Position numbers and translations under genes: made by a program. From positions 248,001-312,000 of the IMG/VR virus record IMGVR_UViG_3300042308_001511: 64,000 nt of DNA, one strand, 5' to 3'. The notes beneath the pieces were generated by a model. That model was not told where the DNA came from. It was given only the letters and a program-made list of their open reading frames with translations, and ran no database searches. Positions 4,588 to 63,749 of this stretch are shown in pieces; positions within the stretch are counted from its first letter, which is position 1, and each line of letters starts with the position of its first letter.

Positions 4588-4631
4588 ATAAAAAAATAAG
4601 TTTAGGGTATATATAAAACTCCATAGATGGT

Positions 4632-5276
4632 TTACCTAATACTGACCTGAATCTCATTACCATCTATGAACTGGCACCAAGCAAACCTACCATCCTGAGA
4701 TACATTTACATCAAATCCCCACGTCTTCAAAGATTGAACGGATCTTTCGTGTTTCACATGTGTTACATCATCCAGTAATAACACTTTATTGCGTCTTATA
4801 TTCAATGGCCACGACATAAACTCAATAAATTCTAAATAACCAACACCACCTGCACTATCTAAAAATACTAATTGTTTAGTCTCATTTTTGGCGAACAGAC
4901 TAAGTGCATCCTCAACTAAAACCGGATATAAAACTTCTTGAATATAAGATACTTTAGGTCTCGTAGAATCATAGATACCACCATCTGGGAAAGTCATAGA
5001 CATAATACCCTTTATTAAGTTTTCCCTTTTTAGTGAAAGACCATGAACGAAGCAAACATTATCTAAACCTTCCAAGTTTTGTACAGCATGTGTTATATGA
5101 TTAGGATTACATTCAATTGTAAAAACATTTAGACCTTCACCTGCGAAAACCTTTGTAGAACCGGTGCCCAAAAACGTACCAGTCTCTACAACTTCATTTA
5201 TATTATATTCCTTAACTAAACGTTTTACTGTGTCTCTAAACTCGTTCGAGTTCAACTCTATACCATAGTTTGCCAT
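4632..5276 (-). CDS. Class I SAM-dependent methyltransferase
   Basis: VVETGTFLGTGST motif I; VFLDS; LLLDD. Confidence 0.7.
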   Translation of the reverse strand: MANYGIELNSNEFRDTVKRLVKEYNINEVVETGTFLGTGSTKVFAGEGLNVFTIECNPNHITHAVQNLEGLDNVCFVHGLSLKRENLIKGIMSMTFPDGGIYDSTRPKVSYIQEVLYPVLVEDALSLFAKNETKQLVFLDSAGGVGYLEFIEFMSWPLNIRRNKVLLLDDVTHVKHERSVQSLKTWGFDVNVSQDGRFAWCQFIDGNEIQVSIR

Positions 5277-5277
5277 A

Positions 5278-5673
5278 TTATTCTATTCCTAATTTTTCAA
5301 GTCTGACGTCACGCCAATCTTGTGTATTCTTTTGATCCACCACCATATCCACTGATTCACTATAATAACCATTCGATTCTCCAAACCATCTAATAGTAAC
5401 CCAACCTTTTATAGTTGCAAAACGATAAAAGGTCCAGGTTGCACTTTCATATTTACCAGTAACATCAACATTTGAACTTTCTTCACAGACAATAAGTGGT
5501 GAACCTTCGAGATCCGATAAGTCACCACAAATATCATCTATCGTAACAGACTCACAACAATCCTGACTATGCATAAATGTGTATATCCTACCATCTTCGC
5601 AATACATAACAATACTTTCGTCAATACACCTGACCGCGAACATCGTTAATCCAACTAAATCATTTACCATCAT
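5278..5673 (-). CDS. Conserved phage protein (DUF7448-like), C-tag
   Basis: QDCCESV..DICGDL..TWTFY..IRWFGESNGYYSE; ends WRDVRLEKLGIE. Confidence 0.65.
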   Translation of the reverse strand: MMVNDLVGLTMFAVRCIDESIVMYCEDGRIYTFMHSQDCCESVTIDDICGDLSDLEGSPLIVCEESSNVDVTGKYESATWTFYRFATIKGWVTIRWFGESNGYYSESVDMVVDQKNTQDWRDVRLEKLGIE

Positions 5674-5694
5674 TTTTTTGTTTATGCTACGTTG

Positions 5695-6384
5695 TTATGC
5701 TACGTTGGTAACCATATAAGTTGCCATCGCTTCCCATCTATCTGGAAAATTTACAGCCATCTTAGTTACCATTATAAACATCCTCATATTTATAGATACT
5801 TTATCTTTTACAGAATCTAAGAAGTTTAAAGCTTCTATTTTTATTTCTCTGCAGTATTCTGGAAGAACGTTGTCTATTATTGCACTCATTCGTTCAACTT
5901 TATCTTCTGGTGACATAGATAAATCTACCACAAGACTTCTCGAAAGAACTGCTTGGTCAAGTGAAGACTTCTTTTTATTTGATATAAAAATTATACGACC
6001 GTTGAATTTGAACTTATTCGGATACTCGTCAGATTTGTTCATTTTAGACATCCATGTAATCTCTCTTTCATCATATGAATCAAGTGCAGACTTAAGTATG
6101 TTGATTGCAACTTTGTCCTCTAACACAGAATCACAATCGTCGAAAATAATAACCTTACCGTTGTTATCATAAAGAGAGTTGTAAAGACCTCTGGCAGTTG
6201 AATAACCTTTGAAGAAAACATACTCTTGTTCCTCCATACCACATTCAACTAACGCATTCTTTATAGAATACGATTTTCCCAAGCCCCCTTCCCCCGTCAC
6301 AATCAGCGATGGTGAAACACCCATTATAACCATCTTAGCCAAATCTCCTAAAAACCCAAATCTTTTGTTTATCTCAAATTCCAT
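5695..6384 (-). CDS. AAA+ family ATPase
   Basis: Walker A GEGGLGKS, Walker B IIFDDCD, IIFISN sensor, LSRS arginine finger. Confidence 0.85.
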   Translation of the reverse strand: MEFEINKRFGFLGDLAKMVIMGVSPSLIVTGEGGLGKSYSIKNALVECGMEEQEYVFFKGYSTARGLYNSLYDNNGKVIIFDDCDSVLEDKVAINILKSALDSYDEREITWMSKMNKSDEYPNKFKFNGRIIFISNKKKSSLDQAVLSRSLVVDLSMSPEDKVERMSAIIDNVLPEYCREIKIEALNFLDSVKDKVSINMRMFIMVTKMAVNFPDRWEAMATYMVTNVA

Positions 6385-6453
6385 ACGTTCCTTATTTGTT
6401 ACACTACAAATATAACAAAACTAAATAACAAAACAATAAAACAATAAAACAAT

Positions 6454-6912
6454 TTATAGCGACTCGTAAACAAAATCCGCTGCTGTACACGGTGCCGAAG
6501 TAGCGAGTTGATCACACCTTTCATTGAGTTCAGTACCTACGTGACCTTTTACCCAATTTATCTTTACTGACTTTAATCTCCTCGAAACCGAAAGGTATTC
6601 CTTCCATAAATCAGGGTTTTTCTTACCACTAAATCCTTTCTTTTCCCAACCGAATACCCAACCCTTCATCACAGAGTCACAAACGTATTTAGAGTCGGTA
6701 TAGACAACTACATCTAAATCTTGACGAGTTATCGCCCTTAGACCTTCGATAGTGGCAGTAAGTTCCATCCTATTATTTGTTGTCATCCTGAAACCACCAC
6801 TTAGTTCTTTACGTTTCCCTTTCCAACAAAGAACCACGCCCCATCCACCAGGACCGGGATTTCCTCTGGATGATCCGTCTGTCCAGACTTCTACTTTAGA
6901 TTCTTTTTCCAT
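6454..6912 (-). CDS. rnhA: Ribonuclease HI
   Basis: WTDGSSRGNPGPGGWG, TTNNRMEL, YTDSKYV, KNPDLW, WVKGH, NERCDQLA. Confidence 0.97.
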   Translation of the reverse strand: MEKESKVEVWTDGSSRGNPGPGGWGVVLCWKGKRKELSGGFRMTTNNRMELTATIEGLRAITRQDLDVVVYTDSKYVCDSVMKGWVFGWEKKGFSGKKNPDLWKEYLSVSRRLKSVKINWVKGHVGTELNERCDQLATSAPCTAADFVYESL

Positions 6913-6947
6913 ATTATATTTTTGTATTTAAACTCATAAAATAATTA

Positions 6948-8753: not shown

Positions 8754-10031
8754 TTATTTTCCTGTTCCTTCGCAGTATTCACAACTTTCAGAGTCGTAGT
8801 TTGTGTTGCAGGTGGAACACTCGACTTGACCGTCACCGTTACAATATTCACATTCCATTGTTCCACGACCACCGCACTCCTCACAATCAACTTCCTCGGT
8901 CTCACCTTCGCTATCCTCTATCTCAATCGATCCGTCACCGTCACAGGTTCCACATTGCCAGCTTCCTGTTCCTTCACAGTCTCCGCACTCCTGCATACCT
9001 TTGTTACAATCCGGACAGAGCTTGTGACCTCCTTCACAGTGTACACAATCACAACTTCCGTCCATTTCTTCGAGTTCCATATCGTATTCGGTACCGAAGT
9101 ATCCGTCGTTGTTACTTATTATCATATCGTTCTTGAAGAAATACTTAAGAGTGTCCATATATGGCCATTGTGAGTAGTGGTCACTACCCATCTCAACAGT
9201 GAAATATTTTGCACTCTCATCTTCTTTACCTTTGTAAATTGCGGTGAAATGCTCGTCATTGTTTTGAGACTCTTTGTAATGGTAACCATTGTCGTTGGCC
9301 CAGTTTTTGAAAACATTAACAAGTGACTCCTCGTTTGTGTAGATCCTATCCATCAACTTACCTTGTTTCTCGTACTTCATCTGGTACCCTTTATTCGAGT
9401 ATATTGCGATGTCAGTCCAGAGTATGGCTCTACCGACGATTAGATTCTGGTCTTCTGGAGACTTAAGTATGAGCAGCTTGCAGACGTCCGGATTGTTGGC
9501 GTATAAGTCAAAGTAATCAGATTTGTGTGCGTGTCTCATACACGACTTACCTAAGTCACCCTCTTGATTATAATAATTATTTACATTGTAGAACTTCCTG
9601 ATGTCTTCACCATCGACGACCTCCAAATACTTCTCCATATCATTAGCAAGTTGCTGCTCTCCTTTGTATCTGGTGACAAATTTGTAGACGTCCTCCTCGT
9701 TAACCTCAACGAATGGATCATCGAGGTTATATTCTTTGACCCATTGTCTTACAGCATTTATAATTGAGTTAACTACTTTACCGATGTTAGCGAGTTGTTT
9801 TTTATCACTCTCTGGGTGGTTAGTGAAACTGGCTTTACCGACCTCTCTTGACAAACCGATGTAGGTCTGTCTGAGTTTCTCGAAATCTCCACCACCTAAC
9901 TTTATAAGTGCTGCTGCGACCTTATCTTGGTGTTTGTTACTTATTATTTGTAGGGTGTCGAAAAAGTCTTCCTCGAAAATAAGGTACATCTCGTTCAACA
10001 TGAATAGTTCGTACGTCTTTAGTTTTCTCAT
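8754..10031 (-). CDS. N-tag protein with SC/GRA/DRxY domain and C-terminal DnaJ-like Zn fingers
   Basis: MRKLKTYELF start; repeated CxxCxGxG (CGDCEGTG, CGTCDGDG, CEECGGRG, CEYCEGTG); late motif 10036-10046. Confidence 0.7.
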   Translation of the reverse strand: MRKLKTYELFMLNEMYLIFEEDFFDTLQIISNKHQDKVAAALIKLGGGDFEKLRQTYIGLSREVGKASFTNHPESDKKQLANIGKVVNSIINAVRQWVKEYNLDDPFVEVNEEDVYKFVTRYKGEQQLANDMEKYLEVVDGEDIRKFYNVNNYYNQEGDLGKSCMRHAHKSDYFDLYANNPDVCKLLILKSPEDQNLIVGRAILWTDIAIYSNKGYQMKYEKQGKLMDRIYTNEESLVNVFKNWANDNGYHYKESQNNDEHFTAIYKGKEDESAKYFTVEMGSDHYSQWPYMDTLKYFFKNDMIISNNDGYFGTEYDMELEEMDGSCDCVHCEGGHKLCPDCNKGMQECGDCEGTGSWQCGTCDGDGSIEIEDSEGETEEVDCEECGGRGTMECEYCNGDGQVECSTCNTNYDSESCEYCEGTGK

Positions 10032-10061
10032 AAGGTTATATATAAAAAACTAAATTCCGAT

Positions 10062-10273
10062 TCATAATCCAAGCTCTTTCATCTTGATAATCTAAAGTGT
10101 TCTATTTCTATGTTATAAATTTCACATATACTCTCAGTTGACATCTTAGAAAAAAGTTCTGGTGTCAAACCATGCTTGAAATATCCATCTATGAACCAAT
10201 GACAGCGTTGTCTTGCCTCGTAAATCTGTGCATCAAGATCGAACGTACTTATTACTTTTTGTAGTGGTTTCAT
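10062..10273 (-). pseudogene. Hypothetical protein, C-tag split by an apparent 1-nt frameshift
   Basis: ORF ends HFRLSR* at 10079; the -1 frame continues MKELGL* to 10062. Confidence 0.55.
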
Positions 10274-10286
10274 AGTACAAATATAA

Positions 10287-10724
10287 TTAACTTCTATCTA
10301 ATAATCCATTTATTCTAATTTCTCTCAACAAATATTTCATCTCATCATCGTGTGAGTGTTCCCATTCATCCATAACCTGCCTTATTTTGGGATGAAGTCC
10401 GTTGTAAGAAAAATCGTGAGTATCATCCCATTCAGTACCTTTGAACTTCTCTATTATAAGTAATGGCGTCATTTTTTTCTGAATACTCTGAATAAGTTGT
10501 ATATGTCCAGCAACCAGGTCGAAGTTTGACCATCTATCACACCATTTAGTCTTAATATAAGAATCGATGAAATCGGTTGTTATTGCAGGTGGTTTAGAGT
10601 TTCCAAAATAAGAGTGCCACTTCTCCAATATGTAAGTAGCATCCATATCCTCAACCTTACTACCCATAAGGCGATTGAAGTGGAAAGCGAACCTTAACAT
10701 ATTGTATAATCTATTCTCTGTCAT
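10287..10724 (-). CDS. C-tag hypothetical protein
   Basis: ends LLREIRINGLLDRS. Confidence 0.65.
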   Translation of the reverse strand: MTENRLYNMLRFAFHFNRLMGSKVEDMDATYILEKWHSYFGNSKPPAITTDFIDSYIKTKWCDRWSNFDLVAGHIQLIQSIQKKMTPLLIIEKFKGTEWDDTHDFSYNGLHPKIRQVMDEWEHSHDDEMKYLLREIRINGLLDRS

Positions 10725-11091: not shown

Positions 11092-11445
11092 TTATTCATC
11101 ATCTAATAGTTCGTCAATCTTTTTGTCTCTGATTTCCTGTGCAGTGTTGTTTGATCCGGTCTCCCACTTCACTTTGTACTCCTCGATGAATTTTCGGCCG
11201 TCCTCGACGGTGTCGAATTTCTTGCCGTACGATTCTATGCTGTCGTATGTGGCGTCTACATACCTTCCGCAAATGTCTTCTGTGAGGCATATAGTACCGT
11301 TGGCTTTGTTATAATATGATATGACGTGGTATGTCCAAAGCACCTTCGCGGTGTTGAATATCCCGTATACACCTAATTGTATGTCGTTCGAATTAGTTTT
11401 ATAGTCCTTCGGGTGGGTTGTGTATAACATCTTACCTTTGTACAT
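11092..11445 (-). CDS. C-tag hypothetical protein
   Basis: ends IRDKKIDELLDDE. Confidence 0.65.
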   Translation of the reverse strand: MYKGKMLYTTHPKDYKTNSNDIQLGVYGIFNTAKVLWTYHVISYYNKANGTICLTEDICGRYVDATYDSIESYGKKFDTVEDGRKFIEEYKVKWETGSNNTAQEIRDKKIDELLDDE

Positions 11446-11491
11446 AGTATTCTTTTTTGCTAATATAATGTATTTTTTTTATATATAGTAT

Positions 11492-12136
11492 ATGATGTAT
11501 TTAAAAACTTTCGAAGGTTTCGCAGAAGGAAATAGGGGCTATGTGATGCAGGTTATTACGTCCATGTGTGAGAACGACGAGATTGACTTCTCACTCGAGA
11601 CGACCAGTGTGAAGGACGGGAAGGAGACCGATTCGGTGTTTATTTTTCGTCTCGATAAAGGACCGCAGATTGAATCCGTACACGAGGCGATTGCTAGGCT
11701 CGACGACATCGGTTACTTCGCACAGAAGGTGAATTGGATACACGCCTTTCACTGTGTCATTGTTTACAGGAAGGACTGCTTGCTGGTCGATTATATGGAC
11801 GAGTTCTACGAGCGGGCTTTGAGCAGAAGAAAACTTTCTGGTGGTTATTTGGATTGTCTGGTCGGATCCCATCCTGAGAAGTCCCAGGAGATATACGCGG
11901 ATATGATTAAGAATTACGAGCACGTCGTTCTTGGAAACGAGACGTATTTCATCAGTGAGAAGGCGGAACAGTTGACGCTGAACCACGGTTCTGTGGAATG
12001 GAAGGACGGCAAATTCGGGTGGCTGCCTAAGACGAAGACCAGACATTTCGCGACTATGTACAAAACGAACAGTGCTTGGTGGTCTTGGTATTCTACATTG
12101 GATGTAGATGACTGCATCTTTATTCCCTGGACTTAG
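11492..12136 (+). CDS. N-tag hypothetical protein
   Basis: MYLKTFEGF start; TTTATATATAG at 11478-11488. Confidence 0.65.
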   Translation: MMYLKTFEGFAEGNRGYVMQVITSMCENDEIDFSLETTSVKDGKETDSVFIFRLDKGPQIESVHEAIARLDDIGYFAQKVNWIHAFHCVIVYRKDCLLVDYMDEFYERALSRRKLSGGYLDCLVGSHPEKSQEIYADMIKNYEHVVLGNETYFISEKAEQLTLNHGSVEWKDGKFGWLPKTKTRHFATMYKTNSAWWSWYSTLDVDDCIFIPWT

Positions 12137-12151: not shown

Positions 12152-12739
12152 ATGAAATGGATTAAAACATATGAAGCTTTTGGTAACGAACTCGAGACAG
12201 CTATACAAGTTGTTATAACGATGCTCGGTGAGGTCGAACGGCTGTACAAGGTGCCACGGAGCGAGTGGGGCGACGAAAAGATTGACGTGCCTGAGGAACT
12301 TATAGTGCTAGAGCTTCTGGACTATGACCGGTACACGAAGGATTGGGACGACTTCGAGGCGATGATGGCGGAGCAGTGCCCGGGCGTTCTCTTCCGTGAG
12401 AACATGAGGAACCGAAGGATTGTGCTCGGACTGGGCTCATTCGACGAGTACTGCATAAAGAAGCTGAACGAGATGTTCCCTTATAGCTGGGCCGATGAAA
12501 TGAGTACGCCGAACATATACACTTACAGGACGCCTTCGATGCGCTTCGACCAGGGCCTCGCGTTCCGTGAGCCTGTGCTGAACAAGGTCAAGGTGGCGAG
12601 CTATGTCTGGACTTTCCTGGACGCGGTGATGTGTATGGGTAATAGGAGTCGTGACGCGCAGAGGCTGGTTGGTCGTTGGCTTAACGAGATGCTCGGCTGG
12701 GATCTGGACGTGAATAGGACGACCTACGATAGTTGGTAA
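12152..12739 (+). CDS. N-tag hypothetical protein
   Basis: MKWIKTYEAF start. Confidence 0.65.
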   Translation: MKWIKTYEAFGNELETAIQVVITMLGEVERLYKVPRSEWGDEKIDVPEELIVLELLDYDRYTKDWDDFEAMMAEQCPGVLFRENMRNRRIVLGLGSFDEYCIKKLNEMFPYSWADEMSTPNIYTYRTPSMRFDQGLAFREPVLNKVKVASYVWTFLDAVMCMGNRSRDAQRLVGRWLNEMLGWDLDVNRTTYDSW

Positions 12740-12755: not shown

Positions 12756-13988
12756 TCAGTTTAAAATCTTGGTAGCATAACCGTTATTATATTCCTTTTT
12801 GGTAATAACGTCAACTATTGTAATATCAGTCTTTTGTGATTTAGACCATTTTACAAACTCAGGAAGGTGATCTCTTCGATCATCATAGAAAACAACCTCA
12901 GTTGGGTTGAATTCTTTTATCTTATCTTCTAATGTTTTGATTTTATATTCTAAGGTTACTGAGTCGATTGGTTTAAAGATATATTCATCAAACTCTAAGT
13001 TTTGACTTTCTAATACTTTTCGAACTTCATTTTCTAAAGTTACGACACGACCAGTCATCATTATAAGATAATCACCATTTTCCTTACTATGATTGTATTT
13101 GTCAATGGTCCAATCATTTGTTTTAATATCAAACAAAGATAAATCTAATGATAGTGGTGATTTCCACCAATCAACACCCCTTTTAAAAGGCTCACCAAAT
13201 TTCAACATCCATTCACTTTTAATTGGTGTATGAAATAAAGTATCGTCAAAATCAAAAAATACTAATCTTTGAGTGGTTAAACTTTCTTTTATAACATAAG
13301 TGTCATTTTTTCTAACTGCCAATTTTCCATCCATAAATTTGTAAAACTTATATTTCTTATCAATTGAGGTTACAATATAATAAGAATCTGGGTTTAATCC
13401 TTTATATCTCTTAATATTTCCGTCTATTTTAATACCATCAACTTCACCACCTTGTTGTTTAGCATAAGCCCACTTAATATAGTTAGGATCGACATGTCTA
13501 TCTCTTAGTTTATCTTGATCCAATGAAGTCTGAAGTGTTGATAAAAGATGTATAAAAACAATTTCATAGTTAAACTCTTTTGCTTTATCAAATATTTCTT
13601 TAACGTGTCTAAACCCTTTATCTGTAAATTCTTTACCTGCACCAGTTGTATCATAGATAAAGTTTTGACCAGTTTTAATAAAAGATTCTAATTTACTAAT
13701 ATTTAATTCAGATGCATTTTTAGTTCTACCACCTTCCGGAGTTTCTTTACCTTTGTAATAAACATTTGGATCTCCAGTATAAAGAAGTGATACGTCATCA
13801 GTTGAGAAATCTTTTATACTTTGATTCTTAGTATGTATATGATTCTTAATAAAATAAGATTTACCAATACCAGGTGCTCCAATAAGAAAAACTGCTAAAC
13901 CTTTTTCCTTATTAATTATTTCTTTGATAGGTTCATTTTTAGACCATTCTTCTAAAATAAATTGTTGATAGATATTTATATACTTCAT
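12756..13988 (-). CDS. N-tag P-loop kinase (zeta-toxin/AAA_33-like) fused to HAD phosphatase; Pnkp-like architecture
   Basis: Start reassigned to MKYINIYQQFILE behind TAATATATAC (13992-14001); GAPGIGKS, FIYDTTG; FFDFDDTLF, MMTGR, FYDDR. Confidence 0.75.
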   Translation of the reverse strand: MKYINIYQQFILEEWSKNEPIKEIINKEKGLAVFLIGAPGIGKSYFIKNHIHTKNQSIKDFSTDDVSLLYTGDPNVYYKGKETPEGGRTKNASELNISKLESFIKTGQNFIYDTTGAGKEFTDKGFRHVKEIFDKAKEFNYEIVFIHLLSTLQTSLDQDKLRDRHVDPNYIKWAYAKQQGGEVDGIKIDGNIKRYKGLNPDSYYIVTSIDKKYKFYKFMDGKLAVRKNDTYVIKESLTTQRLVFFDFDDTLFHTPIKSEWMLKFGEPFKRGVDWWKSPLSLDLSLFDIKTNDWTIDKYNHSKENGDYLIMMTGRVVTLENEVRKVLESQNLEFDEYIFKPIDSVTLEYKIKTLEDKIKEFNPTEVVFYDDRRDHLPEFVKWSKSQKTDITIVDVITKKEYNNGYATKILN

Positions 13989-14019
13989 AAAGTATATATT
14001 ATGAATGCAACTTATATTT

Positions 14020-14313: not shown

Positions 14314-14348
14314 ATTCCTAGTACATCGATTGTTTGTTCTTTTCTCAT
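14310..14348 (-). CDS. 12-aa minigene MRKEQTIDVLGI (C-tag only)
   Basis: ATG at 14348 overlaps the upstream TGA; its TGA overlaps the ATG at 14313. Confidence 0.55.
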   Translation of the reverse strand: MRKEQTIDVLGI

Positions 14349-14632
14349 ATTCCGAGATTTTTTAACGTTTCATCTCTCTTCCATGCCAATATTGTAGATT
14401 CGTCGGTATTGGCATAGTCTTCCCACCATTCGATTCCTCTCTTCGTCTCATTCCAGTTAAACGAGCGCGAAATGAAATCTTGGAAGTCATGACGCCACCA
14501 AGTAAAAAATGTTTCTAAACTTGTTCCCTGTTTCACATGATATGACCTATTGAATTCCTGTAGCCATTCCTCTTGCATATCTTTTGTCATCAGACTATGA
14601 TAATACGAACCTTGTTCCCTCTTTTTAATCAT
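14345..14632 (-). CDS. C-tag hypothetical protein
   Basis: ends KRDETLKNLGI. Confidence 0.65.
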   Translation of the reverse strand: MIKKREQGSYYHSLMTKDMQEEWLQEFNRSYHVKQGTSLETFFTWWRHDFQDFISRSFNWNETKRGIEWWEDYANTDESTILAWKRDETLKNLGI

Positions 14633-14853
14633 ATTCCAATCTCCTTAAGCCTTTCTTCTCTGTGCTCGTAAATGTGCTTGAAGTCCGATTTTTGTCGTAT
14701 CCTGTCTTTTTCGTCCTCGCAGGTGACGATGACGAGTTTTGGTCCTATCTCAAGGTCGGGGCAGTCCGTTGTCTCGTATGTCCTTCCGGTCTTCAGCAGC
14801 CAGTTGCCGTCAACGTCTATCAGGTCGTGCTTCGATATCATCGTCTCGTTCAT
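14629..14853 (-). CDS. C-tag small beta-barrel-like protein (paralog of 58063..58302)
   Basis: Start reassigned to coupled ATG (MNETMISKHD); shares ISKHD..DGxW..YETxDCP..GPKLVIVTCED; ends HREERLKEIGI. Confidence 0.7.
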   Translation of the reverse strand: MNETMISKHDLIDVDGNWLLKTGRTYETTDCPDLEIGPKLVIVTCEDEKDRIRQKSDFKHIYEHREERLKEIGI

Positions 14854-15131
14854 ATTCCCAGTTCTTTCATTCTTTCCTCGCGGTGCTCTACGATTACATC
14901 GTTCAGGTTCTTTAGGTATCTCCACCCGGTTATCGCGTAGTCATGTATTTCAGAATCATTTGTAAAAACATATACCCATATTATGTTTTTACTTCCGACG
15001 TTCAGGTTTTCAGAATTCTCGTGGATTTTTATACTCAACACTTTAGTGCCTTTACTTTCACCGTTCTCGTTGATTATCTGTTGAGCACTACGCATCAGTG
15101 CCTCCTTCTGAAAGTTATCCATGAGTTCCAT
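14850..15131 (-). CDS. C-tag hypothetical protein
   Basis: ends HREERMKELGI. Confidence 0.65.
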   Translation of the reverse strand: MELMDNFQKEALMRSAQQIINENGESKGTKVLSIKIHENSENLNVGSKNIIWVYVFTNDSEIHDYAITGWRYLKNLNDVIVEHREERMKELGI

Positions 15132-15784: not shown

Positions 15785-15820
15785 AAGAGTAGATTTTCTA
15801 CAAATATAAACAAACTCCTC

Positions 15821-16054: not shown

Positions 16055-16116
16055 ATTAGTTTTGTTCTTTATATACTTCTACCTGATTTTTGTTATATTC
16101 GTAGAAAAAAAAGAAT

Positions 16117-16746: not shown

Positions 16747-16747
16747 A

Positions 16748-17446: not shown

Positions 17447-17449
17447 TAT

Positions 17450-41705: not shown

Positions 41706-41712
41706 CTTTCTA

Positions 41713-50324: not shown

Positions 50325-50353
50325 TTTTTTTACAAATATAACAAATATAAGAA

Positions 50354-53469: not shown

Positions 53470-53807
53470 ATTCCTAGTTCTATTAGTCTCTGTTCTCGTA
53501 TCTCACGGAGATACTCTTTTATAGGATAGCACCATTTCCTTGGCGGCACTTCCTCTAAACGATAATCTCCTTCATTCGAACTTGATAATACTAATCTTTC
53601 AATTTCCTCATCAGGAAGGATTTCGAATTGTATGGTTATGTAGTTTTCATTCGGTGTTCTGGATTCGTATACTATTTCTACTATTGATCCCTCGCGACCG
53701 ATGTATTTCTCCATACGTTGATCCCAGTACATATTCGAAGAGTTTTTCTTATTTGTGAACCTGAACCCTTTTGCTTTTTGTCCTAACTCTAGTGTACCTA
53801 CTTTCAT
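53466..53807 (-). CDS. C-tag KGFxF-family protein
   Basis: GQKAKGFRF..GREG..WCYP; ends IREQRLIELGI. Confidence 0.7.
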   Translation of the reverse strand: MKVGTLELGQKAKGFRFTNKKNSSNMYWDQRMEKYIGREGSIVEIVYESRTPNENYITIQFEILPDEEIERLVLSSSNEGDYRLEEVPPRKWCYPIKEYLREIREQRLIELGI

Positions 53808-54004
53808 ATCCCCAGTTCTTCCAGCTGTTTCTCTCTCCACTTATTCATTGGTATTACCGTTCTTATATTATGCCAGGTAAAATAACCTTTATCATCAACT
53901 ATTTTATAGTCAAAATAAGTTTGGTCGATAACGTCATATGCCTTACCATAGGTGAGGTTCGTAGTTGTGCCGTAGCTGATCTCGCTTATACAAACAACTT
54001 TCAT
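53804..54004 (-). CDS. C-tag SH3-like protein (LTYGKxY family)
   Basis: MKVVCI..LTYGKAYDV; ends WREKQLEELGI. Confidence 0.7.
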   Translation of the reverse strand: MKVVCISEISYGTTTNLTYGKAYDVIDQTYFDYKIVDDKGYFTWHNIRTVIPMNKWREKQLEELGI

Positions 54005-54005
54005 T

Positions 54006-54401
54006 TCATTTCGTTTTTGTAATCTCTTTGTCGAAGCAGTATAGAGCATCCAGAACCTCTTTCTTTGTGTCGAAGTTGTTCCATTCGTTGAAGTAATCGA
54101 AAACACACCCGTCTACGCCGTCTGCGTAAATAGATACTTCCCACCACTTTGTCTCACACTCTTCGTTGAATATATCCACCGTGAAGTTCTTGCCGTGGTA
54201 TGTGTACCACCCAATCCCATTTTTGGTCACTTTGATACCGTCTTCTTTCAGGATCTCACCGAAAGACTTTGGCTTACACAGCTTGGCCCACTTCTTCGCT
54301 AGTTTGTCGTACTGAGATTTATAGTCAGTGTAGTTCATCTTACCTGCTTTATAGTCTTCACCAAGTGTCAGAATGTTTTGTTTTATTTCTTCGTGTGTCA
54401 T
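54006..54401 (-). CDS. Hypothetical protein
   Basis: Start MTHEEIKQ after TATATTTG at 54420-54427. Confidence 0.6.
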   Translation of the reverse strand: MTHEEIKQNILTLGEDYKAGKMNYTDYKSQYDKLAKKWAKLCKPKSFGEILKEDGIKVTKNGIGWYTYHGKNFTVDIFNEECETKWWEVSIYADGVDGCVFDYFNEWNNFDTKKEVLDALYCFDKEITKTK

Positions 54402-54473
54402 CGCAGTGGGTTTGTTTAACAAATATAGTTAAATGGTTTAACACCTCATCATATCCCCCATTGTATTTTTATT

Positions 54474-56563: not shown

Positions 56564-56800
56564 TTATTCAATTCCAATTTCTTTTAGTTTAAGTTCCCTG
56601 AACTCTTCCTGTGTCACGAACCTAGTTCTTAGGTAGTCATTGCTTATACCCATATCGTTGATGAGCGTGTAGAATCTTATGTGATATGTTTCGATTACGT
56701 AGTATGTCTTCCCATAGGTAAGCTCTTGACCTCCATTTTGTCCGAATTTGAGTATGTCGGTCTCGCAGTCTATGCAGACGAGTGGTTTTCCTTTCATCAT
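56564..56800 (-). CDS. C-tag SH3-like protein (LTYGKxY family)
   Basis: LVCI..LTYGKTYYV..INDMG..RF; ends FRELKLKEIGIE. Confidence 0.7.
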   Translation of the reverse strand: MMKGKPLVCIDCETDILKFGQNGGQELTYGKTYYVIETYHIRFYTLINDMGISNDYLRTRFVTQEEFRELKLKEIGIE

Positions 56801-58062: not shown

Positions 58063-58302
58063 TTAGATTCCGAGTGAATCGATCCTCTGTTCTCTGTATT
58101 CTGCCATATCCATAAAGTCTGACCTGCGGCGGACCCTGTATTGACCGTCTTCACAGGTGACGATGACAAGTTTTGGTCCTAGCTCACCAGTTGGTGTGTA
58201 CGTTGAAGGGCAGTCTGATGTCTCGTAAGCCTTTCTAGCTTTCATTAACCATACTCCGTTACCATCCTTCCAATCGTGTTTGGATATCATTATATCGTTC
58301 AT
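58063..58302 (-). CDS. C-tag protein (paralog of 14629..14853)
   Basis: ends YREQRIDSLGI. Confidence 0.7.
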   Translation of the reverse strand: MNDIMISKHDWKDGNGVWLMKARKAYETSDCPSTYTPTGELGPKLVIVTCEDGQYRVRRRSDFMDMAEYREQRIDSLGI

Positions 58303-58514
58303 ATTCCTAGTTTTTCCAGTACGAGTTGTCTTTTTTCCACAGTTGATATGAATAGTTCTCTATCGTATATTGCATAGTCGGTTTCGCCGTTTCCCCAGTA
58401 TATTGCGTAGTAGTTTACTCTATCCACCGCATCGTACCATTCGCCAATCTTTATGTCGGTGTGATAGCCGGATCTGTTTGATACACACTGAACTTTTATC
58501 CTCTGTCGTTTCAT
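58299..58514 (-). CDS. C-tag SH3-like protein
   Basis: VQCVSN..IGEWYDA; ends KRQLVLEKLGI. Confidence 0.65.
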   Translation of the reverse strand: MKRQRIKVQCVSNRSGYHTDIKIGEWYDAVDRVNYYAIYWGNGETDYAIYDRELFISTVEKRQLVLEKLGI

Positions 58515-58777
58515 ATTCCGAGTTCTTTTATCTTTTGGTCTCTTAGTCGTATTTTGTATTCGTCGAGATTTATGGTGATGTCTTTTTTATAGGTGAAATG
58601 TTTCTTCATACCTTGTACGTTCTTTATGATAGTAAAGTAATAGTTCACCATTAGTAAGTCTTCGGTAAAGTCTAATTGTATTTCGTAGATTTTATCGATG
58701 ACTATTTTATCTCTTTCTATCGTAGGCTCTTTTTCGGTTATAAAGTCCTTTATCAGTTCGTTGTCGTATTCGATCAT
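58511..58777 (-). CDS. C-tag hypothetical protein
   Basis: ends LRDQKIKELGI. Confidence 0.65.
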   Translation of the reverse strand: MIEYDNELIKDFITEKEPTIERDKIVIDKIYEIQLDFTEDLLMVNYYFTIIKNVQGMKKHFTYKKDITINLDEYKIRLRDQKIKELGI

Positions 58778-59028
58778 TCTATTCCTAGTTCATCGAGTTT
58801 TCTGTCTCTTTGTCTCTGTGCCTCGCTGAGGTTGATTAGTCGGCCTCTTGTGTGTGAATTTGGGCTGTGGAAGTTTTTGTTGTGACTCGACGTCCACGGT
58901 ATGTCGAGCTCGCTGGACCAAATCCATATTCTATCGTACGTGAAGTTCTTGTCGTCGAGTTCCTCTATCGTGAACGTCTTTTCTGGCTGTGTTTCCCAGT
59001 ACACGAGGTCTCCTACCTGGTAGTTCAT
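58774..59028 (-). CDS. C-tag SH3-like protein
   Basis: YQVGDLVYW; ends QRDRKLDELGIE; TATATTCG at 59088-59095. Confidence 0.65.
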   Translation of the reverse strand: MNYQVGDLVYWETQPEKTFTIEELDDKNFTYDRIWIWSSELDIPWTSSHNKNFHSPNSHTRGRLINLSEAQRQRDRKLDELGIE

Positions 59029-59168
59029 ATCCCTATTACTTTTACGTGCGACTTTATATCCATTGGTGTTCCTGCTGTTTTATTTTCCGAATATAAGTAA
59101 ATAATATGTAACTGACAAATTATAGTTATTTTATTTTTAATATATAAGATATAAAAAAAATATTTATA

Positions 59169-60341
59169 ATGGCAACATTTACCACATCAAAAACTTCTGG
59201 AAGTATATATGTATCTGTTAATACAACAACGGGTTATTGGATGAGTTTCCATAATGGAAGTTATAATGGAAATTCAAACACCCCACAGATATATAGTGAT
59301 TCTGGTACCTTCAATTATTGGGGTAAAAGATTGGATGTAATTGCAACAAATGGTGAATTTACAATTGTCGCGTGTGATGTTAATGGAAACATTGGTGGTG
59401 ATATAACTTTGTTGAATTTATATTCTAGTTCTGATATAATTGCGTTTGACGGAACTGGTTTGACCGCTTTGACTAAATTGAGTATAGAGGGTGCATCGAA
59501 TATTAGAGGTCAGCTAACATCTTTTGATGCGACTGGTATGACTTCATTGAATTGGTTATACTTAAGGAGTAATTTACTAACAAATATAAACGTAACTGGT
59601 TTAGTAAATCTAACTAAGTTAGTGTTGGATGGTAATCAATTAACTTGGGGAGGTATAAGTGGTTTAAATACTTTGAGTAGTTTAACTTGGTTAAACTTAA
59701 ATGGTAACTTATTAACTACATTTGATGGTTCAGGTTTGAGCTCGTTATTACAACTTGATTTGTTCTACAATCAGGTAACAACATCTGGAATAACTAATTT
59801 ACCAAATACATTGGTTAAATTGAATTTACGTTATAATAGACTTACATCATTTGATGCTACTAGTTTAGTAAACTTAACTGAACTTAGTTTACAGATGAAT
59901 CAAATAACATCTGTAAATTTATCTGGCCTAACAAAATTGATTTTACTTAATTTATCTGATAATTTATTGACAGATATAAATGTTTCTGGATTGACTAGTT
60001 TGAAATATATAAATCTTACTGGTAATCGTTTATCTACAATGGATGTAAGTGGTCTAACTAATTTAGTTGATTTGAGATTATGGCGTAATTCGTCTATAAC
60101 ACCTAGTGTTAACAATCAGATATTACAACAATTGGATCAAAATGGTGCTATTGGTGATACTTCTACTAGTAAGGGTTACTTTCCAGCAAATGGTGTTTTT
60201 TGGTCTAATAATGGTAGAACTTCTGTTAGTAATGTAAGTTTCAATAATTTGACGAATAAAAATTGGGAATTTGATGGTTTGGATTTGATTGCGAGTCCAA
60301 CTCGTCAGTTATCGGGCACTAAGGACAGAAAAAACTTATAA
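59169..60341 (+). CDS. Leucine-rich repeat (internalin-like) protein
   Basis: About 10 repeats of LTxLxLxxNxLTxxDxSG; TAATATATAA at 59138-59147. Confidence 0.85.
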   Translation: MATFTTSKTSGSIYVSVNTTTGYWMSFHNGSYNGNSNTPQIYSDSGTFNYWGKRLDVIATNGEFTIVACDVNGNIGGDITLLNLYSSSDIIAFDGTGLTALTKLSIEGASNIRGQLTSFDATGMTSLNWLYLRSNLLTNINVTGLVNLTKLVLDGNQLTWGGISGLNTLSSLTWLNLNGNLLTTFDGSGLSSLLQLDLFYNQVTTSGITNLPNTLVKLNLRYNRLTSFDATSLVNLTELSLQMNQITSVNLSGLTKLILLNLSDNLLTDINVSGLTSLKYINLTGNRLSTMDVSGLTNLVDLRLWRNSSITPSVNNQILQQLDQNGAIGDTSTSKGYFPANGVFWSNNGRTSVSNVSFNNLTNKNWEFDGLDLIASPTRQLSGTKDRKNL

Positions 60342-62285: not shown

Positions 62286-62303
62286 TAAAAATAAAATAAT
62301 AAA

Positions 62304-62969
62304 ATGAAAAATCAAAAATGGAAATACAATCAGAAGGCAGAAGACGCGTGGCAAGTTTTGAGAATACAAAGTGAGTTTATAAAGGGATTCGATGAATTAT
62401 CTGAGTTAACTCCATGTATATCGGTCTTCGGATCTGCTAGGACTGATAAAGACGACAAATATTATAAAGAAGCAACTAGATTGTCTGAGATGATTGTAAA
62501 AAGTGGATATGGTGTAATAACTGGTGGTGGACCAGGAATAATGGAGGCTGCAAATATGGGTGCGTATGGTAATGATGGTAAATCTGTGGGTTTGGAAATT
62601 GAATTACCATTTGAGACAAGTGCTAATAAGTATATTGATAAATTGGTTTCGTGTAGGTATTTCTTTACACGAAAAGTATTCTTTTTGAAGTATTCACAAG
62701 CATTTGTTGGTTTTCCGGGTGGTTTTGGAACATTAGATGAATTGTTCGAAACATTGACACTTATGCAGACTGGACATCTAAGGATGTTGCCAATTGTTTT
62801 AGTTGGTAAAGACTATTGGAAAGGGATGATTAAATGGATTAAGAAAACTATGTTAGAGGATGGTAAAGTTTCTAAAGAAGATTTAAACCTTTTCAAAGTT
62901 GTTGATACTGCAGAAGAAGCGATGGAGTATATTTTATCGAAATTGGAAGAGAACAAACCTAACTTTTAG
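62304..62969 (+). CDS. LOG-family (TIGR00730) nucleotide phosphoribohydrolase
   Basis: FGSAR, ITGGGPGIMEAANMGA, IELPFE, FFTRK, PGGFGTLDELFE. Confidence 0.93.
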   Translation: MKNQKWKYNQKAEDAWQVLRIQSEFIKGFDELSELTPCISVFGSARTDKDDKYYKEATRLSEMIVKSGYGVITGGGPGIMEAANMGAYGNDGKSVGLEIELPFETSANKYIDKLVSCRYFFTRKVFFLKYSQAFVGFPGGFGTLDELFETLTLMQTGHLRMLPIVLVGKDYWKGMIKWIKKTMLEDGKVSKEDLNLFKVVDTAEEAMEYILSKLEENKPNF

Positions 62970-63027
62970 TAACTGGTTTTGGTGTATAGTTTATAATATA
63001 TAGTTTATAAAAAAAAATAAATCTACG

Positions 63028-63237
63028 ATGATAAAATTGAAGAAGTTTGAGGAGTTGGATTACGAACAGCTTAGAGACCAAACGAATAGAGACTTCCACG
63101 GAAGTAAATCAGATACTGTTGAATATCCGGATGTTAGGAATATGAATAGGGATGAGTTGAAGGACTATCTTGAAACTATTGGTGTTCCATCAAACATACT
63201 CGATGAAACTGTGGATAATATACTTAGTGCACTATAA
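63028..63237 (+). CDS. N-tag small protein
   Basis: MIKLKKFEEL; TAATATATAG at 62994-63003. Confidence 0.6.
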   Translation: MIKLKKFEELDYEQLRDQTNRDFHGSKSDTVEYPDVRNMNRDELKDYLETIGVPSNILDETVDNILSAL

Positions 63238-63238
63238 T

Positions 63239-63270
63239 AAAAATACCTTCCAATTGGAAGGTATTTTTTT
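63239..63270. terminator. Bidirectional terminator
   Basis: AAAAATACCTTCC-AATT-GGAAGGTATTTTT between convergent genes. Confidence 0.85.
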
Positions 63271-63700
63271 ATTCAAATGTTACTATTTTTCCTATAAATA
63301 CACAATGTTTATTATATTTTGATTTCTCACCAGTTTCCACATTCACCACAAAAAATGCTTCTTTAGATTCTTTGGCATCGTACATCTCGTACTCTGTCAT
63401 ACCTTCAAAGTTTATTACTTCAAGATAACAATTCTTTGGAATTGCCATTCCTGATATGATTTTACCATCTGTTGATTTCACATATATTTTGTTTGTACTT
63501 TTTCTATACACAACGAAGAAGTCTGCACCATAACCTAATATTTGCTTATCATCATCTATTGTCTCCACAAAAAGTGTCTTACCTGTCTCAGAACTAACTA
63601 TTGCGGTCTGGTAGTCGTCTAGCTCGTCTAAATATATTTCACTTTGTGCACTTACCAGTGTAGATAAGAATAGTAATGTGATTGTGATAATGTTTCTCAT
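63269..63700 (-). CDS. Secreted hypothetical protein
   Basis: Signal peptide MRNIITITLLFLSTLVSA; TATATTCG at 63718-63725. Confidence 0.6.
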   Translation of the reverse strand: MRNIITITLLFLSTLVSAQSEIYLDELDDYQTAIVSSETGKTLFVETIDDDKQILGYGADFFVVYRKSTNKIYVKSTDGKIISGMAIPKNCYLEVINFEGMTEYEMYDAKESKEAFFVVNVETGEKSKYNKHCVFIGKIVTFE

Positions 63701-63749
63701 AGTAGTTTTCGTTTCTACGAATATACTAAATTTTTATCAATTACGGTCT

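Follow-up and report, generated by a model that had tools for sequence, protein, structure and literature searches.

In phage T4, capsid-targeting sequences at the N-termini of the internal proteins direct these proteins to the head: residues 4 and 7 of the peptide target the protein, and residues 8 and 10 direct its processing (PMC9026906). Short terminal peptides also serve as degradation signals, as ClpX reads both N- and C-terminal degron classes of about 10-12 residues (PMC12723719), and the cargo of encapsulins carries C-terminal loading peptides. The present work concerns a 344,083-bp record of a jumbo phage from lake metagenomes, in which about a quarter of all proteins carry one of two short end-tags, and each tag goes almost exclusively with one of two promoter types. 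The N-terminal tag closely matches the T4 capsid-targeting peptide, whereas the C-terminal tag, found on about 85 small, predicted early proteins, has no known counterpart.

Two terminal peptides and two promoter boxes

We called 488 genes in the record and analyzed in detail a window of 64,000 nucleotides (bases 248001-312000 of the record), to which all coordinates below refer unless stated otherwise. The C-tag (consensus W-R-E-x-K-L-x-E-L-G-I-COOH) was described by a position matrix for the last 11 residues (W-R-[ED]-x-[KR]-[LI]-x-[ED]-[LI]-G-I, with a variant R-[DE]-x-K-I-[DN]-E-[IL]-L-[DE]), which scores at least 11 bits at 85 C-termini but at only 6 of 98,538 internal positions. The N-tag (consensus M-K-Y-I-K-T-Y-E-x-F; matrix M-[KR]-[YHW]-[IL]-[KR]-x-[YF]-E-x-F) scores at least 9 bits at 42 N-termini and at 0 of 1,812 internal Met positions, and a register-free core matrix adds 9 more genes, giving at least 51. 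Among the 109 genes of the window, 15 carry the N-tag, 29 carry the C-tag, and none carries both. Genome-wide, a single weak protein (record positions 319662-319880, - strand) has both tags, against 7.3 expected (Fisher P=0.005).

Two promoter boxes were overrepresented upstream of genes. The box T[AT]ATATATA (P1), which is phage-specific, occurs 94 times on both strands, and 80 of these occurrences lie within 100 nt upstream of a gene in sense, against 6.7 expected. The box TATATT[TC]G (P2), which fits the TAnnTTTG box of Bacteroidota hosts, occurs 43 times (31+12) upstream in sense, against about 8 expected. The contingency test of tag and promoter class that had been suggested beforehand was carried out across the whole genome. 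With a promoter directly upstream, N-tag genes split 33 P1 to 0 P2 and C-tag genes 3 to 8 (P=9e-7); by the nearest promoter in the same-strand run, the split is 48 to 1 against 14 to 52 (P=2e-18); and per transcription unit it is 38 to 2 against 9 to 18 (P=6e-8). In the window, P1 is the nearest promoter of all 15 N-tag genes, whereas the C-tag genes split into 21 with P2, 7 with P1, and 1 with none. Some of the C-tag cases assigned to P1 are reverse-strand hits of this near-palindromic box. The observation of the preliminary description, that promoter class predicts the tag and that the two tags exclude each other, is thus confirmed and is stronger genome-wide than in the window, and the association is almost certainly real. 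The same tags and the same box recur in five other viral records, with zero control matches.

Tagged genes of the window

Fifteen N-tag genes were identified in the window. The gene 8754-10031 (-) (MRKLKTYELF; 22.9 bits) encodes 425 aa with a CxxC-rich tail and has a P1 box at 10037-10045 (-), 5 nt before the ATG. The genes 11492-12136 (+) (MMYLKTFEGF; 21.7 bits) and 12152-12739 (+) (MKWIKTYEAF; 23.1 bits) form one unit led by a P1 box at 11479-11487 (+), 4 nt before the first ATG. The gene 12756-13988 (-) (MKYINIYQQF; 14.8 bits), with a P1 box at 13993-14001 (-), 4 nt before the ATG, encodes a P-loop kinase plus HAD phosphatase-like protein (Pfam HAD_SAK_1, 7e-10). A four-gene - strand operon is headed by 20519-22273 (-), which has a degenerate N-tag (MNMKWIKGRKQF) below the matrix threshold and a P1 box at 22278-22286 (-), 4 nt before the ATG; it continues with the N-tag genes 19875-20522 (MKHLRRFNES; 17.1 bits), 19171-19869 (MKHIRRFDRVF; 17.7 bits), the C-terminal part of whose product is 78% identical to Flavobacterium phage immuto gp189, and 17450-19174 (MKHVKAFNIF; 16.1 bits), which has a DnaJ-type zinc finger (Pfam DnaJ_CXXCXGXG, 3.9e-5). 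The gene 26751-27011 (+) (MQILKTYEGF; 19.7 bits) is preceded by AATATATA 19 nt before the ATG.

In the second half of the window, the gene 36663-37544 (+) (MKYIKTYEVL; 21.0 bits) encodes a P-loop NTPase with weak AAA/kinase Pfam hits and has a P1 box at 36637-36645 (+), 17 nt before the ATG, and 37880-38524 (+) (MRLLKTFEGF; 22.1 bits) has one at 37866-37874 (+), 5 nt before the ATG. The shikimate/adenylate-kinase-like gene 39461-40255 (+) (MKYIRTYGIF; 19.0 bits; Pfam SKI) has a P1 box at 39448-39456 (+), 4 nt before the ATG. The genes 44704-45138 (+) (MRYIKLYEDF; 23.3 bits), with P1 5-7 nt before the ATG (7 nt for the box at 44688-44696, +), and 51307-51939 (+) (MRYIKLYEEF; 22.8 bits) are paralogues. 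The GNAT acetyltransferase gene 48662-49372 (-) (MKILKTYEGF; 23.2 bits; Pfam Acetyltransf_1) lies inside a - strand array and has AATATATA 22 nt before the ATG, and 63028-63237 (+) carries a short-register tag (MIKLKKFEEL; core matrix 12.9 bits) behind a P1 box at 62994-63002 (+), 25 nt before the ATG. Degenerate N-tags are also seen in three other P1-led genes: 3211-4587 (-) (MRNIEGFKSFE; box 4608-4616, -, 20 nt before the ATG), 38836-39378 (-) (MRRRLMMFEEF; box 39383-39391, -, 4 nt before the ATG), and 50645-51310 (+) (MKIRMFENW, below the matrix threshold; box 50631-50639, +, 5 nt before the ATG). A P1 box at 59138-59146 (+) lies 22 nt before the ATG of the untagged repeat-rich gene 59169-60341.

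The C-tag genes lie mostly in arrays. A P2 box at 6407-6414 (-) leads 5695-6384 and then the C-tag gene 5278-5673 (-) (...WRDVRLEKLGIE; at least 11 bits). Variant tails end 10287-10724 (-) (...REIRINGLLDRS; 11.1 bits) and 11092-11445 (-) (...RDKKIDELLDDE; 18.6 bits). The box at 15801-15808 (-) leads 15308-15784 and then three overlapping C-tag genes in 14345-15131 (-) (14345-14632, 14629-14853, and 14850-15131). The gene 16117-16746 (+) (...SDKLEELGI; 22.6 bits), which encodes an N-terminal membrane segment and has no downstream same-strand gene, follows the P2 box at 16094-16101 (+) by 15 nt, and the box at 22322-22329 (+) leads 22353 and then the C-tag gene 22932-23147 (+) (...REKRLGDIGL; 20.2 bits). 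The gene 38528-38782 (-) (...EEWREMKLKELGL) has a predicted SH3-like body. The box at 43306-43313 (-) leads the 42934-40722 array, in which six C-tag genes of 40722-42637 (-) (40722-40979, 40976-41203, 41200-41430, 41427-41732, 42021-42362, and 42359-42637) mostly overlap by ATGA, and 43332-43634 (-) ends in ...RHERINELGI.

Three further C-tag genes occupy 45139-46692 (-) (45139-45453, 45450-46004, and 46168-46692), with a P2 box at 46147-46154 lying 142 nt upstream of 46004. The gene 50028-50357 (-) (...REERLKELGV) has P2 boxes at 50333-50349 inside its called 5' end, and 51942-52199 (-) (...RENKLNQLGI) has no downstream same-strand gene. The box at 54420-54427 (-) leads 54006-54401 and then three C-tag genes in 53218-54049 (-) (53218-53469, 53466-53807, and 53804-54049), whereas 56564-56800 (-) ends in ...FRELKLKEIGIE. 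The box at 59088-59095 (-) leads four overlapping C-tag genes in 58063-59028 (-) (58063-58302, 58299-58514, 58511-58777, and 58774-59028). A P2 box at 63718-63725 (-), 17 nt before 63269-63700, marks the end of the region covered by the preliminary description.

The six genes listed in that description as + strand insertions in - strand arrays (11492, 36663, 37880, 39461, 44704, and 50645) all check out, and nine of the 15 N-tag genes of the window are on the + strand amid - strand arrays. However, the other six (8754-10031, 12756-13988, 17450-19174, 19171-19869, 19875-20522, and 48662-49372) are on the - strand, and, genome-wide, only 10 of 39 N-tag units are antiparallel to both neighbours, whereas 14 are parallel to both and 15 sit at strand switches. 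The operon 22273-17450 and the gene 48662-49372 lie on the - strand like the early-type arrays around them, the latter being an example of an N-tag gene with its own P1 box inside a same-strand array with C-tag genes downstream. The suggestion that opposite orientation keeps N-tag genes silent during early transcription is thus contradicted as a rule and appears unlikely.

Tags as modular peptides and the inferred expression programmes

We next considered whether the tags are merely the conserved ends of two large, fast-diverging paralogue families, in which case they would say nothing about destination and the promoter link would reflect where each family was amplified. Clear paralogue groups do exist (a six-member and a five-member C-tag family and a four-member N-tag family), and C-tag genes sit in tandem arrays. 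However, after trimming of the tags, 85 C-tag proteins form 67 BLAST clusters and 42 N-tag proteins form 36, with 60 and 33 singletons, respectively, and the N-tag bodies belong to different Pfam folds (kinase, GNAT, GATase, HAD, and zinc finger), which partly shows, for the N-tag, that the tagged bodies have several unrelated folds. For the kinase encoded by 39461-40255, AlphaFold2 gives a pLDDT of about 90 for the body but about 40 for residues 1-14, and the tag does not pack on the fold; yet 106 of 120 homologues at 40-50% identity keep the tag, and nine homologues carry a different N-peptide on the same body, in another phage lineage. The paralogue explanation is therefore considered unlikely.

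Alternatively, the tags could be by-products of nucleic-acid signals, with the N-tag codons serving translation of leaderless mRNAs and the C-tag codons being the A-rich initiation region and ATGA overlap of the next gene in hosts that lack Shine-Dalgarno pairing. In agreement with this view, 42 P1 genes have the box 4-6 nt from the ATG, 41 of 85 C-tag genes overlap the next gene, 24 of them through ATATGA, and TGA is over-used as their stop codon. In contrast, synonymous codons are mixed at every tag position, with K/R, I/L, and Y/F swaps, and the N-tag is as frequent with 4-6 nt leaders (17/42) as with 12-30 nt leaders (15/42). The C-tag is also present at 16 convergent gene ends, where it scores as high (mean 21.6 bits) as elsewhere, and before 13 gaps over 30 nt, and among small proteins 37% of those with no downstream gene carry it. 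These data make a nucleic-acid origin very unlikely, and indicate that both tags are selected as peptides on unrelated bodies.

The interpretation offered in the preliminary description, a two-channel scheme that couples transcription timing to protein destination, is supported only in part. Two promoter classes and two terminal peptides that sort with them are supported, as is the host-type label of P2, and the N-tag has a direct precedent as a destination signal. However, the TAATATATA box is not specifically late, since it precedes virion genes (head-tail adaptor, tape-measure-like, baseplate wedge, and tail-spike-like) but also ribonucleotide reductase, topoisomerase II, the DnaB helicase unit, and homing endonucleases, suggesting that it is post-early rather than strictly late and that N-tag genes need not be late.

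We propose that the phage, whose host is a Bacteroidota (probably Flavobacteriia), runs two transcription programmes and marks two protein populations with different terminal peptides; as a whole, this model is about as likely as not. In this view, TATATT[TC]G(TAGAAA) is the host sigma-A '-7' box and drives the early units (arrays of small orphan genes, NAD ligase, a phage sigma factor, ClpP, and SmpB), whereas T[AT]ATATATA, which shares the TATAT core and the same spacing to the start codon but differs in the last three bases, is a phage-specific middle and late box that drives virion genes, several replication and nucleotide-metabolism genes, and nearly every N-tag gene. The latter box is most likely read by host RNA polymerase carrying the early-expressed phage sigma factor, the gene of which (Sigma70_r2 plus r4_2) sits in a P2-led unit, although a sigma factor of this type normally needs a -35 element and P1 has none. 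That P2 is early and P1 later is likely. The analysis establishes the tags, the boxes and their association, the selection of the tags as modular peptides, the match to T4, and the gene content. In contrast, timing, the sigma assignment, packaging and cleavage, any partner of the C-tag, and whether the C-tag is a destination signal at all are inferred from sequence alone, the phage being found only in DNA metagenomes.

Comparison with known targeting and degradation signals

The C-tag is predicted to be a 12-residue amphipathic C-terminal helix ending in G-I-COOH. In the AlphaFold2 model of the 38528-38782 product, a beta-barrel is followed by a helix at residues 71-82 that is the tag (pLDDT 86-94); a Foldseek search with this model found SH3 only, and homologues keep the tail. 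We suggest that the tag is read in trans by one common partner, and a docking signal of some kind is somewhat more likely than not. Our preferred partner is the phage's own Clp machinery, as the phage encodes two ClpP, a ClpA/C-like double AAA+ unfoldase, SmpB, and Hsp70, in which case the tag would be a degradation signal that clears early proteins after the switch. This specific reading remains improbable, since Clp degrons described so far are unstructured whereas the C-tag is predicted helical with high confidence, and both ClpP genes are themselves in early-type units. Against the model as a whole, nine C-tag proteins have an N-terminal membrane segment, and 14 C-tag genes have P1 as nearest promoter. 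A further possibility is that the C-tag is also a capsid-loading peptide that binds the inner capsid wall or the scaffold, by analogy with encapsulin cargo peptides, so that the two tags would be alternative tickets to the same place, which would explain why no protein needs both. The mutual exclusion of the tags and the strictly C-terminal motif ending in L-G-I are in line with this idea, but it is unlikely because C-tag genes lie behind the host-type box together with typical early functions, because nine have membrane anchors, and because the tail profile found nothing in the PDB.

For the N-tag, a T4-type capsid-targeting sequence is slightly more likely than not. In this view, it is a detachable N-terminal propeptide whose two aromatic residues three positions apart dock the protein to the prohead core, and the roughly 50 N-tag enzymes (kinases, acetyltransferase, amidotransferase, and zinc-finger proteins) would be packaged in the head and probably ejected into the next host, the peptide probably being cut off after a nearby Glu. 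On the other hand, no T4-type prohead protease, portal, or major capsid protein was detected by Pfam and the capsid genes were not found at all, 50 cargo species is many, and N-tag proteins are acidic (median -4.6 charges per 100 aa), unlike the basic internal proteins of T4. It could also be argued that both tags are degrons, an N-degron and a C-degron for phage-encoded or host Clp proteases, giving two protein populations different lifetimes, neither being a packaging signal; the phage-encoded Clp components, the two degron classes read by ClpX, and the predicted disorder of the N-tag are compatible with this. However, strong conservation of a degron on about 50 enzymes made from the same promoter class as virion genes has no obvious rationale, and the match to T4 is specific, which makes this alternative unlikely. 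On the N-tag core matrix, the T4 sequences of IPII/IPIII (MKTYQEF) and IPI (MKTFKEF) score 15.9 and 14.0 bits, respectively, whereas only 10 of 88,750 internal windows reach 10 bits and none reaches 12. The T4 residues shown to matter for targeting and processing map onto the invariant Y/F7 and F10 of the N-tag, and E/D is enriched 2-4 residues after F10.

Genome context and the two terminal peptides

We examined the two terminal peptides across the entire 344,083-bp virus record that contains the window (referred to as G000), which CheckV estimates as 91% complete and which has a GC content of 36.6%. A total of 488 genes were called with a dicodon model. Several features point to a Bacteroidota host, probably from the Flavobacteriia: a type IX secretion-tail domain (Por_Secre_tail) in the window gene 33516-34805, promoter boxes of the TAnnTTTG type, and the fact that the only nucleotide matches among cultured phages were to a Flavobacterium phage. 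The DNA was found in lake and freshwater metagenomes from eleven coded studies. All twenty-two runs that hold it are DNA metagenomes kept as contigs, and no RNA run could be listed. The stretch at window 32001-40000 has a GC content of 0.435-0.454, compared to about 0.37 elsewhere, and carries the gene for the secretion-tail protein and several genes with signal-peptide-like starts (34896-36574), and may be host-derived. On inspection of the sequence alone, the window genes 1274-2224 (-) and 62304-62969 (+) resemble a methylenetetrahydrofolate reductase and a LOG-family (cytokinin riboside 5'-monophosphate phosphoribohydrolase-like) gene.

Both tags are real. The last eleven residues of 85 proteins fit the C-tag W-R-[ED]-x-[KR]-[LI]-x-[ED]-[LI]-G-I or its variant R-[DE]-x-K-I-[DN]-E-[IL]-L-[DE], whereas the same matrix reaches that score at only 6 of 98,538 internal positions. 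Forty-two proteins start with the N-tag M-[KR]-[YHW]-[IL]-[KR]-x-[YF]-E-x-F, and none of 1,812 internal methionines scores as high; the motif starts at Met1 in 38 of 41 pattern hits. A register-free core, [IL]-[KR]-x-[YF]-E-x-F, adds nine proteins with shorter heads such as MIKKFENF, and more degenerate versions are visible by eye among the genes led by the P1 promoter box (see below), so that at least 51 genes carry the N-tag. Together, the tags mark at least 28% of the proteome.

The tags are peptides rather than relics of protein families or by-products of nucleic-acid signals. After trimming of the tags, the 85 C-tag proteins fall into 67 BLAST clusters and the 42 N-tag proteins into 36. 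The N-tag bodies include P-loop kinases, a kinase-phosphatase, a GNAT acetyltransferase, a class-I amidotransferase, DnaJ-type zinc fingers, and DUF2793, whereas none of 20 C-tag proteins has a named family. Every conserved position uses a mix of synonymous codons and conservative replacements (K/R, I/L across six Leu codons, and Y/F). The N-tag is as common when the promoter box leaves a 4-6 nt leader (17 of 42) as with a 12-30 nt leader (15 of 42). Forty-one C-tag genes overlap the next gene, mostly through ATATGA; however, 16 lie at convergent ends and 13 lie before gaps over 30 nt, and these score equally well. Based on these results, we rejected the possibility that the tags are by-products of the leaderless arrangement or of translational coupling.

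Promoter boxes and their association with the tags

The 7-mer ATATATA lies within 70 nt upstream of 107 genes, against 9.4 expected. The P1 box, T[AT]ATATATA, occurs 94 times in the genome, and 80 of these sites lie just upstream of a gene in sense, with no conserved upstream partner element. Its distance to the ATG is either 4-6 nt (42 genes) or about 17-25 nt. The P2 box, TATATT[TC]G, usually followed by TAGAAA, lies upstream of genes in sense 43 times (31+12), against about 8 expected, and shows the same two distance classes (3-6 or 13-23 nt). The two boxes share TATAT and differ only in the last three bases. Taken together, they sit exactly 3-6 nt before the ATG of about 50 genes (window examples 11479-11494, 39448-39463, and 10273-10285), whereas the other genes have the box 13-25 nt away. 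From the usual position of the -7 box, we infer that the 4-nt class would give leaderless or nearly leaderless mRNAs.

The whole-genome contingency test of tag against promoter class, which had been proposed beforehand, strongly supports the association. With a box directly upstream, N-tag genes split 33 P1 to 0 P2 and C-tag genes 3 to 8 (P=9e-7). By the nearest box along the same-strand run, the split is 48 to 1 for N-tag genes and 14 to 52 for C-tag genes (P=2e-18), and per transcription unit it is 38 to 2 and 9 to 18, respectively (P=6e-8). The two N-tag cases in P2 units are the weakest calls. Several of the C-tag genes assigned to P1 are reverse-strand hits of the near-palindromic box, or lie in units where a P2 box is further away than our 80-nt limit. 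A single weak protein, G000 319662-319880 (-), carries both tags, against 7.3 expected (P=0.005). In the window, none of the 15 N-tag and 29 C-tag genes has both tags; all 15 N-tag genes are served by P1, and 21 of the 29 C-tag genes by P2.

The same picture holds in loci from other viral records, where 11 N-tag ORFs split 8 P1 to 0 P2 and none of 70 C-tag ORFs is double-tagged. Strict DNA patterns for the tags gave 7, 23, 3, 10, and 1 C-tags and 25, 9, 12, 4, and 1 N-tags in five records of 77-476 kb, whereas the reversed control pattern gave zero matches. Among these IMG/VR records, the 77-kb record repeats the C-tag sites of part of the 172-kb record letter for letter; it is probably a fragment of the same or a near-identical phage, so the two are not independent. 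The 476-kb tag-bearing record is classed by IMG/VR as a provirus, 97% complete, a label that deserves a check for a phage of this kind.

The P2-led units hold the arrays of small orphan genes, as well as NAD ligase, a sigma factor with regions 2 and 4, ClpP, thioredoxin, SmpB, and AdoHcy hydrolase. One such unit, G000 14784-19022 (+), carries the sigma factor gene at 14784-15395, ClpP, a 434-aa protein with no family, thioredoxin, and SmpB (Pfam 2e-49). SmpB is the partner of tmRNA, yet no tmRNA, tRNA, or other RNA gene was found by ARAGORN or Rfam anywhere in the 344-kb record. In contrast, P1 precedes virion genes, namely head-tail adaptor, tape-measure-like, the baseplate wedge unit, tail-spike-like, and other structural proteins, but also ribonucleotide reductase, topoisomerase II, the DnaB helicase unit, and homing endonucleases. 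Three large HNH or homing endonuclease genes are present (G000 132671-134443 (-), 175667-177259 (+), and 189534-191453 (+)), of which two belong to the same PHROG family (E about 1e-115) and two sit behind P1 boxes. The flanks of P1 do not separate N-tag genes from virion genes. We infer that P1 marks the post-early class of the phage rather than a purely late one. A sigma gene inside an inferred early unit makes a sigma switch the simplest model, although the assignment of the sigma factor to a box remains an inference.

The observation made in the preliminary description, that promoter class predicts the peptide tag, is thus confirmed at the genome scale. Its interpretation as a two-channel scheme coupling transcription timing to protein destination is partly supported: there are two channels, and the N-tag has a solid precedent as an address, but the promoter that it called late should be read as post-early, and its suggestion that opposite orientation keeps N-tag genes silent during early transcription was rejected. 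The role proposed here for the C-tag is a hypothesis.

Candidate functions of the N-tag and the C-tag

To assess the nature of the N-tag, the internal protein genes were taken from the phage T4 record and scored with the matrix of this phage. IPII and IPIII (MKTYQEF) score 15.9 bits and IPI (MKTFKEF) 14.0 bits, whereas only 10 of 88,750 random internal windows reach 10 bits and none reaches 12. In T4, these ten residues are the capsid targeting sequence, in which residues 4 and 7 direct the protein into the prohead core, residues 8 and 10 direct removal by the prohead protease, and the sequence works on foreign proteins (PMC9026906). The two targeting residues correspond here to Y/F at tag position 7 (50 of 51) and F at position 10 (35 of 51). 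Acidic residues are enriched two to four positions after F10, but with no fixed site.

An AlphaFold2 model of the kinase encoded at window 39461-40255, built from 35 homologues, folds the body with pLDDT near 90 but leaves residues 1-14 at about 40. Nevertheless, 106 of 120 metagenomic homologues at 40-50% identity keep the tag almost unchanged, and nine others carry a quite different N-peptide, MNLNENISRLKGLMGL, on the same body. The latter come from a phage with a different promoter box. An ENA metagenome scaffold of this other lineage (L052, 8189 bp) has its own box, GGTCGGTATATTTATTAT, right before start codons, and its own recurrent N-termini (MNLNENISRLKGLMGL, MKYIITEQQ, and ..KLTESDLVNLIKRV), one of them on a homologue of the window's N-tag kinase. 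A highly conserved, exchangeable N-terminal peptide that is predicted to be structurally detached is what a signal read in trans looks like. Lineage-specific N-terminal peptides may be widespread. In Flavobacterium phage immuto (MW353175 100309-124572), several proteins next to the T4-like portal and terminase genes share other recurrent N-termini (MENFDLKKFLVENKL three times and MKKSQLRQIIKEAL three times). Immuto itself has neither of the two tags and shares only one small gene with this phage. The C-terminal part of the N-tag gene 19171-19869 (window 19183-19446) is 78% identical in protein to a 104-aa immuto gene annotated as TiaS, the only gene shared at that level, suggesting a recent transfer.

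Other results speak against the capsid reading. Pfam models of the T4 protease, portal, and capsid gave nothing above the cut-off, including Peptidase_S77 (T4 gp21), which had no match at E<=1. Searches of 30 large P1-led proteins with Pfam, PHROGs, and NCBIfam found tail and baseplate parts but no capsid, portal, or scaffold, and an Atlas look-up of G000 44051-45688 gave only weak leads to T4 gp9/10-like proteins; the capsid genes were not found at all. In addition, the N-tag proteins are acidic, and in the absence of a proteome their packaging in the head remains inferred from sequence.

For the C-tag, an AlphaFold2 model of the window gene 38528-38782 gives a predicted SH3-like barrel followed by a helix at residues 71-82 (pLDDT 86-94). 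This helix is the tag, and only the last two residues are non-helical. In relatives, the tail is the best-conserved part. Pfam and PHROGs searches of 20 C-tag proteins gave nothing beyond PHROGs of unknown function, and homologues are unnamed metagenome proteins. The tail profile gave only a chance hit to VAMP2 in the PDB (E 1.1) and 8 hits, all unnamed, against 1.84 billion representatives. A tblastn search with a C-tag protein against 50,697 phage records found nothing, and full-text literature searches for the tag strings returned nothing relevant.

The C-tag is strictly terminal, ends in L-G-I, is portable, and marks small proteins of the inferred early class, nine of which are membrane-anchored. 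One common reader is the economical explanation. The phage encodes a full proteolysis set of two ClpP, a double AAA+ unfoldase of the ClpA/C type, SmpB, and Hsp70. At G000 93802-95922 (+), 138004-139902 (-), and 243344-244093 (-), it encodes the ClpA/C-like unfoldase lacking a Clp_N domain, a full-length Hsp70/DnaK (Pfam 2.6e-249), and the second ClpP with a 50-residue N-terminal extension. ClpP is also present in the three most complete tag-bearing relatives. We therefore favor a degradation signal that would clear early proteins, but only as a doubtful proposal, since the predicted helix and the early-type promoters of both ClpP genes speak against it.

In summary, the tags, the boxes, and their association are established by sequence analysis, whereas the early and post-early timing, the use of the boxes by particular sigma factors, the packaging and cleavage of N-tag proteins, and any Clp-dependent degradation through the C-tag are inferred. 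In the most far-reaching view, which we regard as unlikely although it is not excluded, this clade of lake jumbo phages labels its proteome with two addresses: about 50 post-early enzymes would carry a T4-like capsid ticket and be shipped in the head to the next cell, and about 85 early take-over proteins would carry a previously unknown C-terminal tag read by the phage's own Clp unfoldase and ClpP, so that the whole early proteome is erased at the sigma switch. That would be a virus-encoded, genome-wide degron system. If the N-tag is a capsid ticket, a simple sequence rule names about 50 candidate packaged or ejected enzymes per genome in an uncultured phage clade, and would also give a portable tag for loading foreign proteins into large capsids of Bacteroidota phages. 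The C-tag marks 17% of the proteome with one conserved 11-residue ending, which suggests a single common reader for most early orphan proteins, and finding that reader would give a handle on a protein class that is otherwise opaque in every large phage. The pairing of box and tag also offers a clean model of a sigma switch in a phylum whose phage transcription is little studied.

Comparison with known phage and host systems

The phage resembles the recently named moraphages, lake jumbo phages predicted to infect Flavobacteriia (PMC12619734), in its freshwater origin, Bacteroidota host signal, DnaK and DnaJ-type proteins, and homing endonucleases. However, its 344-kb genome is larger than the 307-kb maximum reported for that group, and the paper does not mention tags or promoter boxes.

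The P2 box fits the -7 box TAnnTTTG of Bacteroidota sigma-A promoters, and its use by the host enzyme is inferred. C replaces T at position 7 in a quarter of sites. A TTTG corresponding to the -33 element was seen 17-23 nt upstream at 6 sites, against 1.0 expected, whereas most sites lack it. Similar to T4 late promoters (TATAAATA, read with gp55 and without a -35 element), P1 is an 8-9 nt AT-rich box without an upstream partner that lies in front of virion genes and of genes with tags like the capsid targeting sequence. In contrast, its sequence differs, it also precedes replication and nucleotide-metabolism genes, and the phage sigma factor has regions 2 and 4, whereas gp55 is region-2-like only.

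The C-tag shares several properties with C-terminal degrons of Clp proteases, such as the ssrA tag (AANDENYALAA) and the MuA tail (ILEQNRRKKAI). These comprise about 11 residues at the very C-terminus, with a small and then a hydrophobic residue as the last two and basic residues upstream, and are portable between proteins (PMC12723719). However, there is no sequence match, and the C-tag is predicted to be a stable helix, whereas such degrons are unstructured and accessible. Nothing similar to the C-tag was found in the PDB or in the searchable literature, and it has no known counterpart.

The N-tag is closest to the capsid targeting sequences of the T4 internal proteins IPI, IPII, and IPIII. 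Both are short N-terminal peptides, located in T4 within the first 10-19 residues of the precursor, and both are carried by otherwise unrelated proteins. They share the K-T-[YF]-x-E-F core, with two aromatic residues three positions apart and an acidic residue shortly after, and the genes sit behind an AT-rich box that lacks a -35 element. In contrast to T4, the tag has three extra residues before the core (M-K-Y-I-) and marks at least 51 proteins rather than a handful, and these are acidic enzymes instead of small basic proteins. On this evidence, the N-tag would represent a much expanded version of the T4 system in a distant phage clade.
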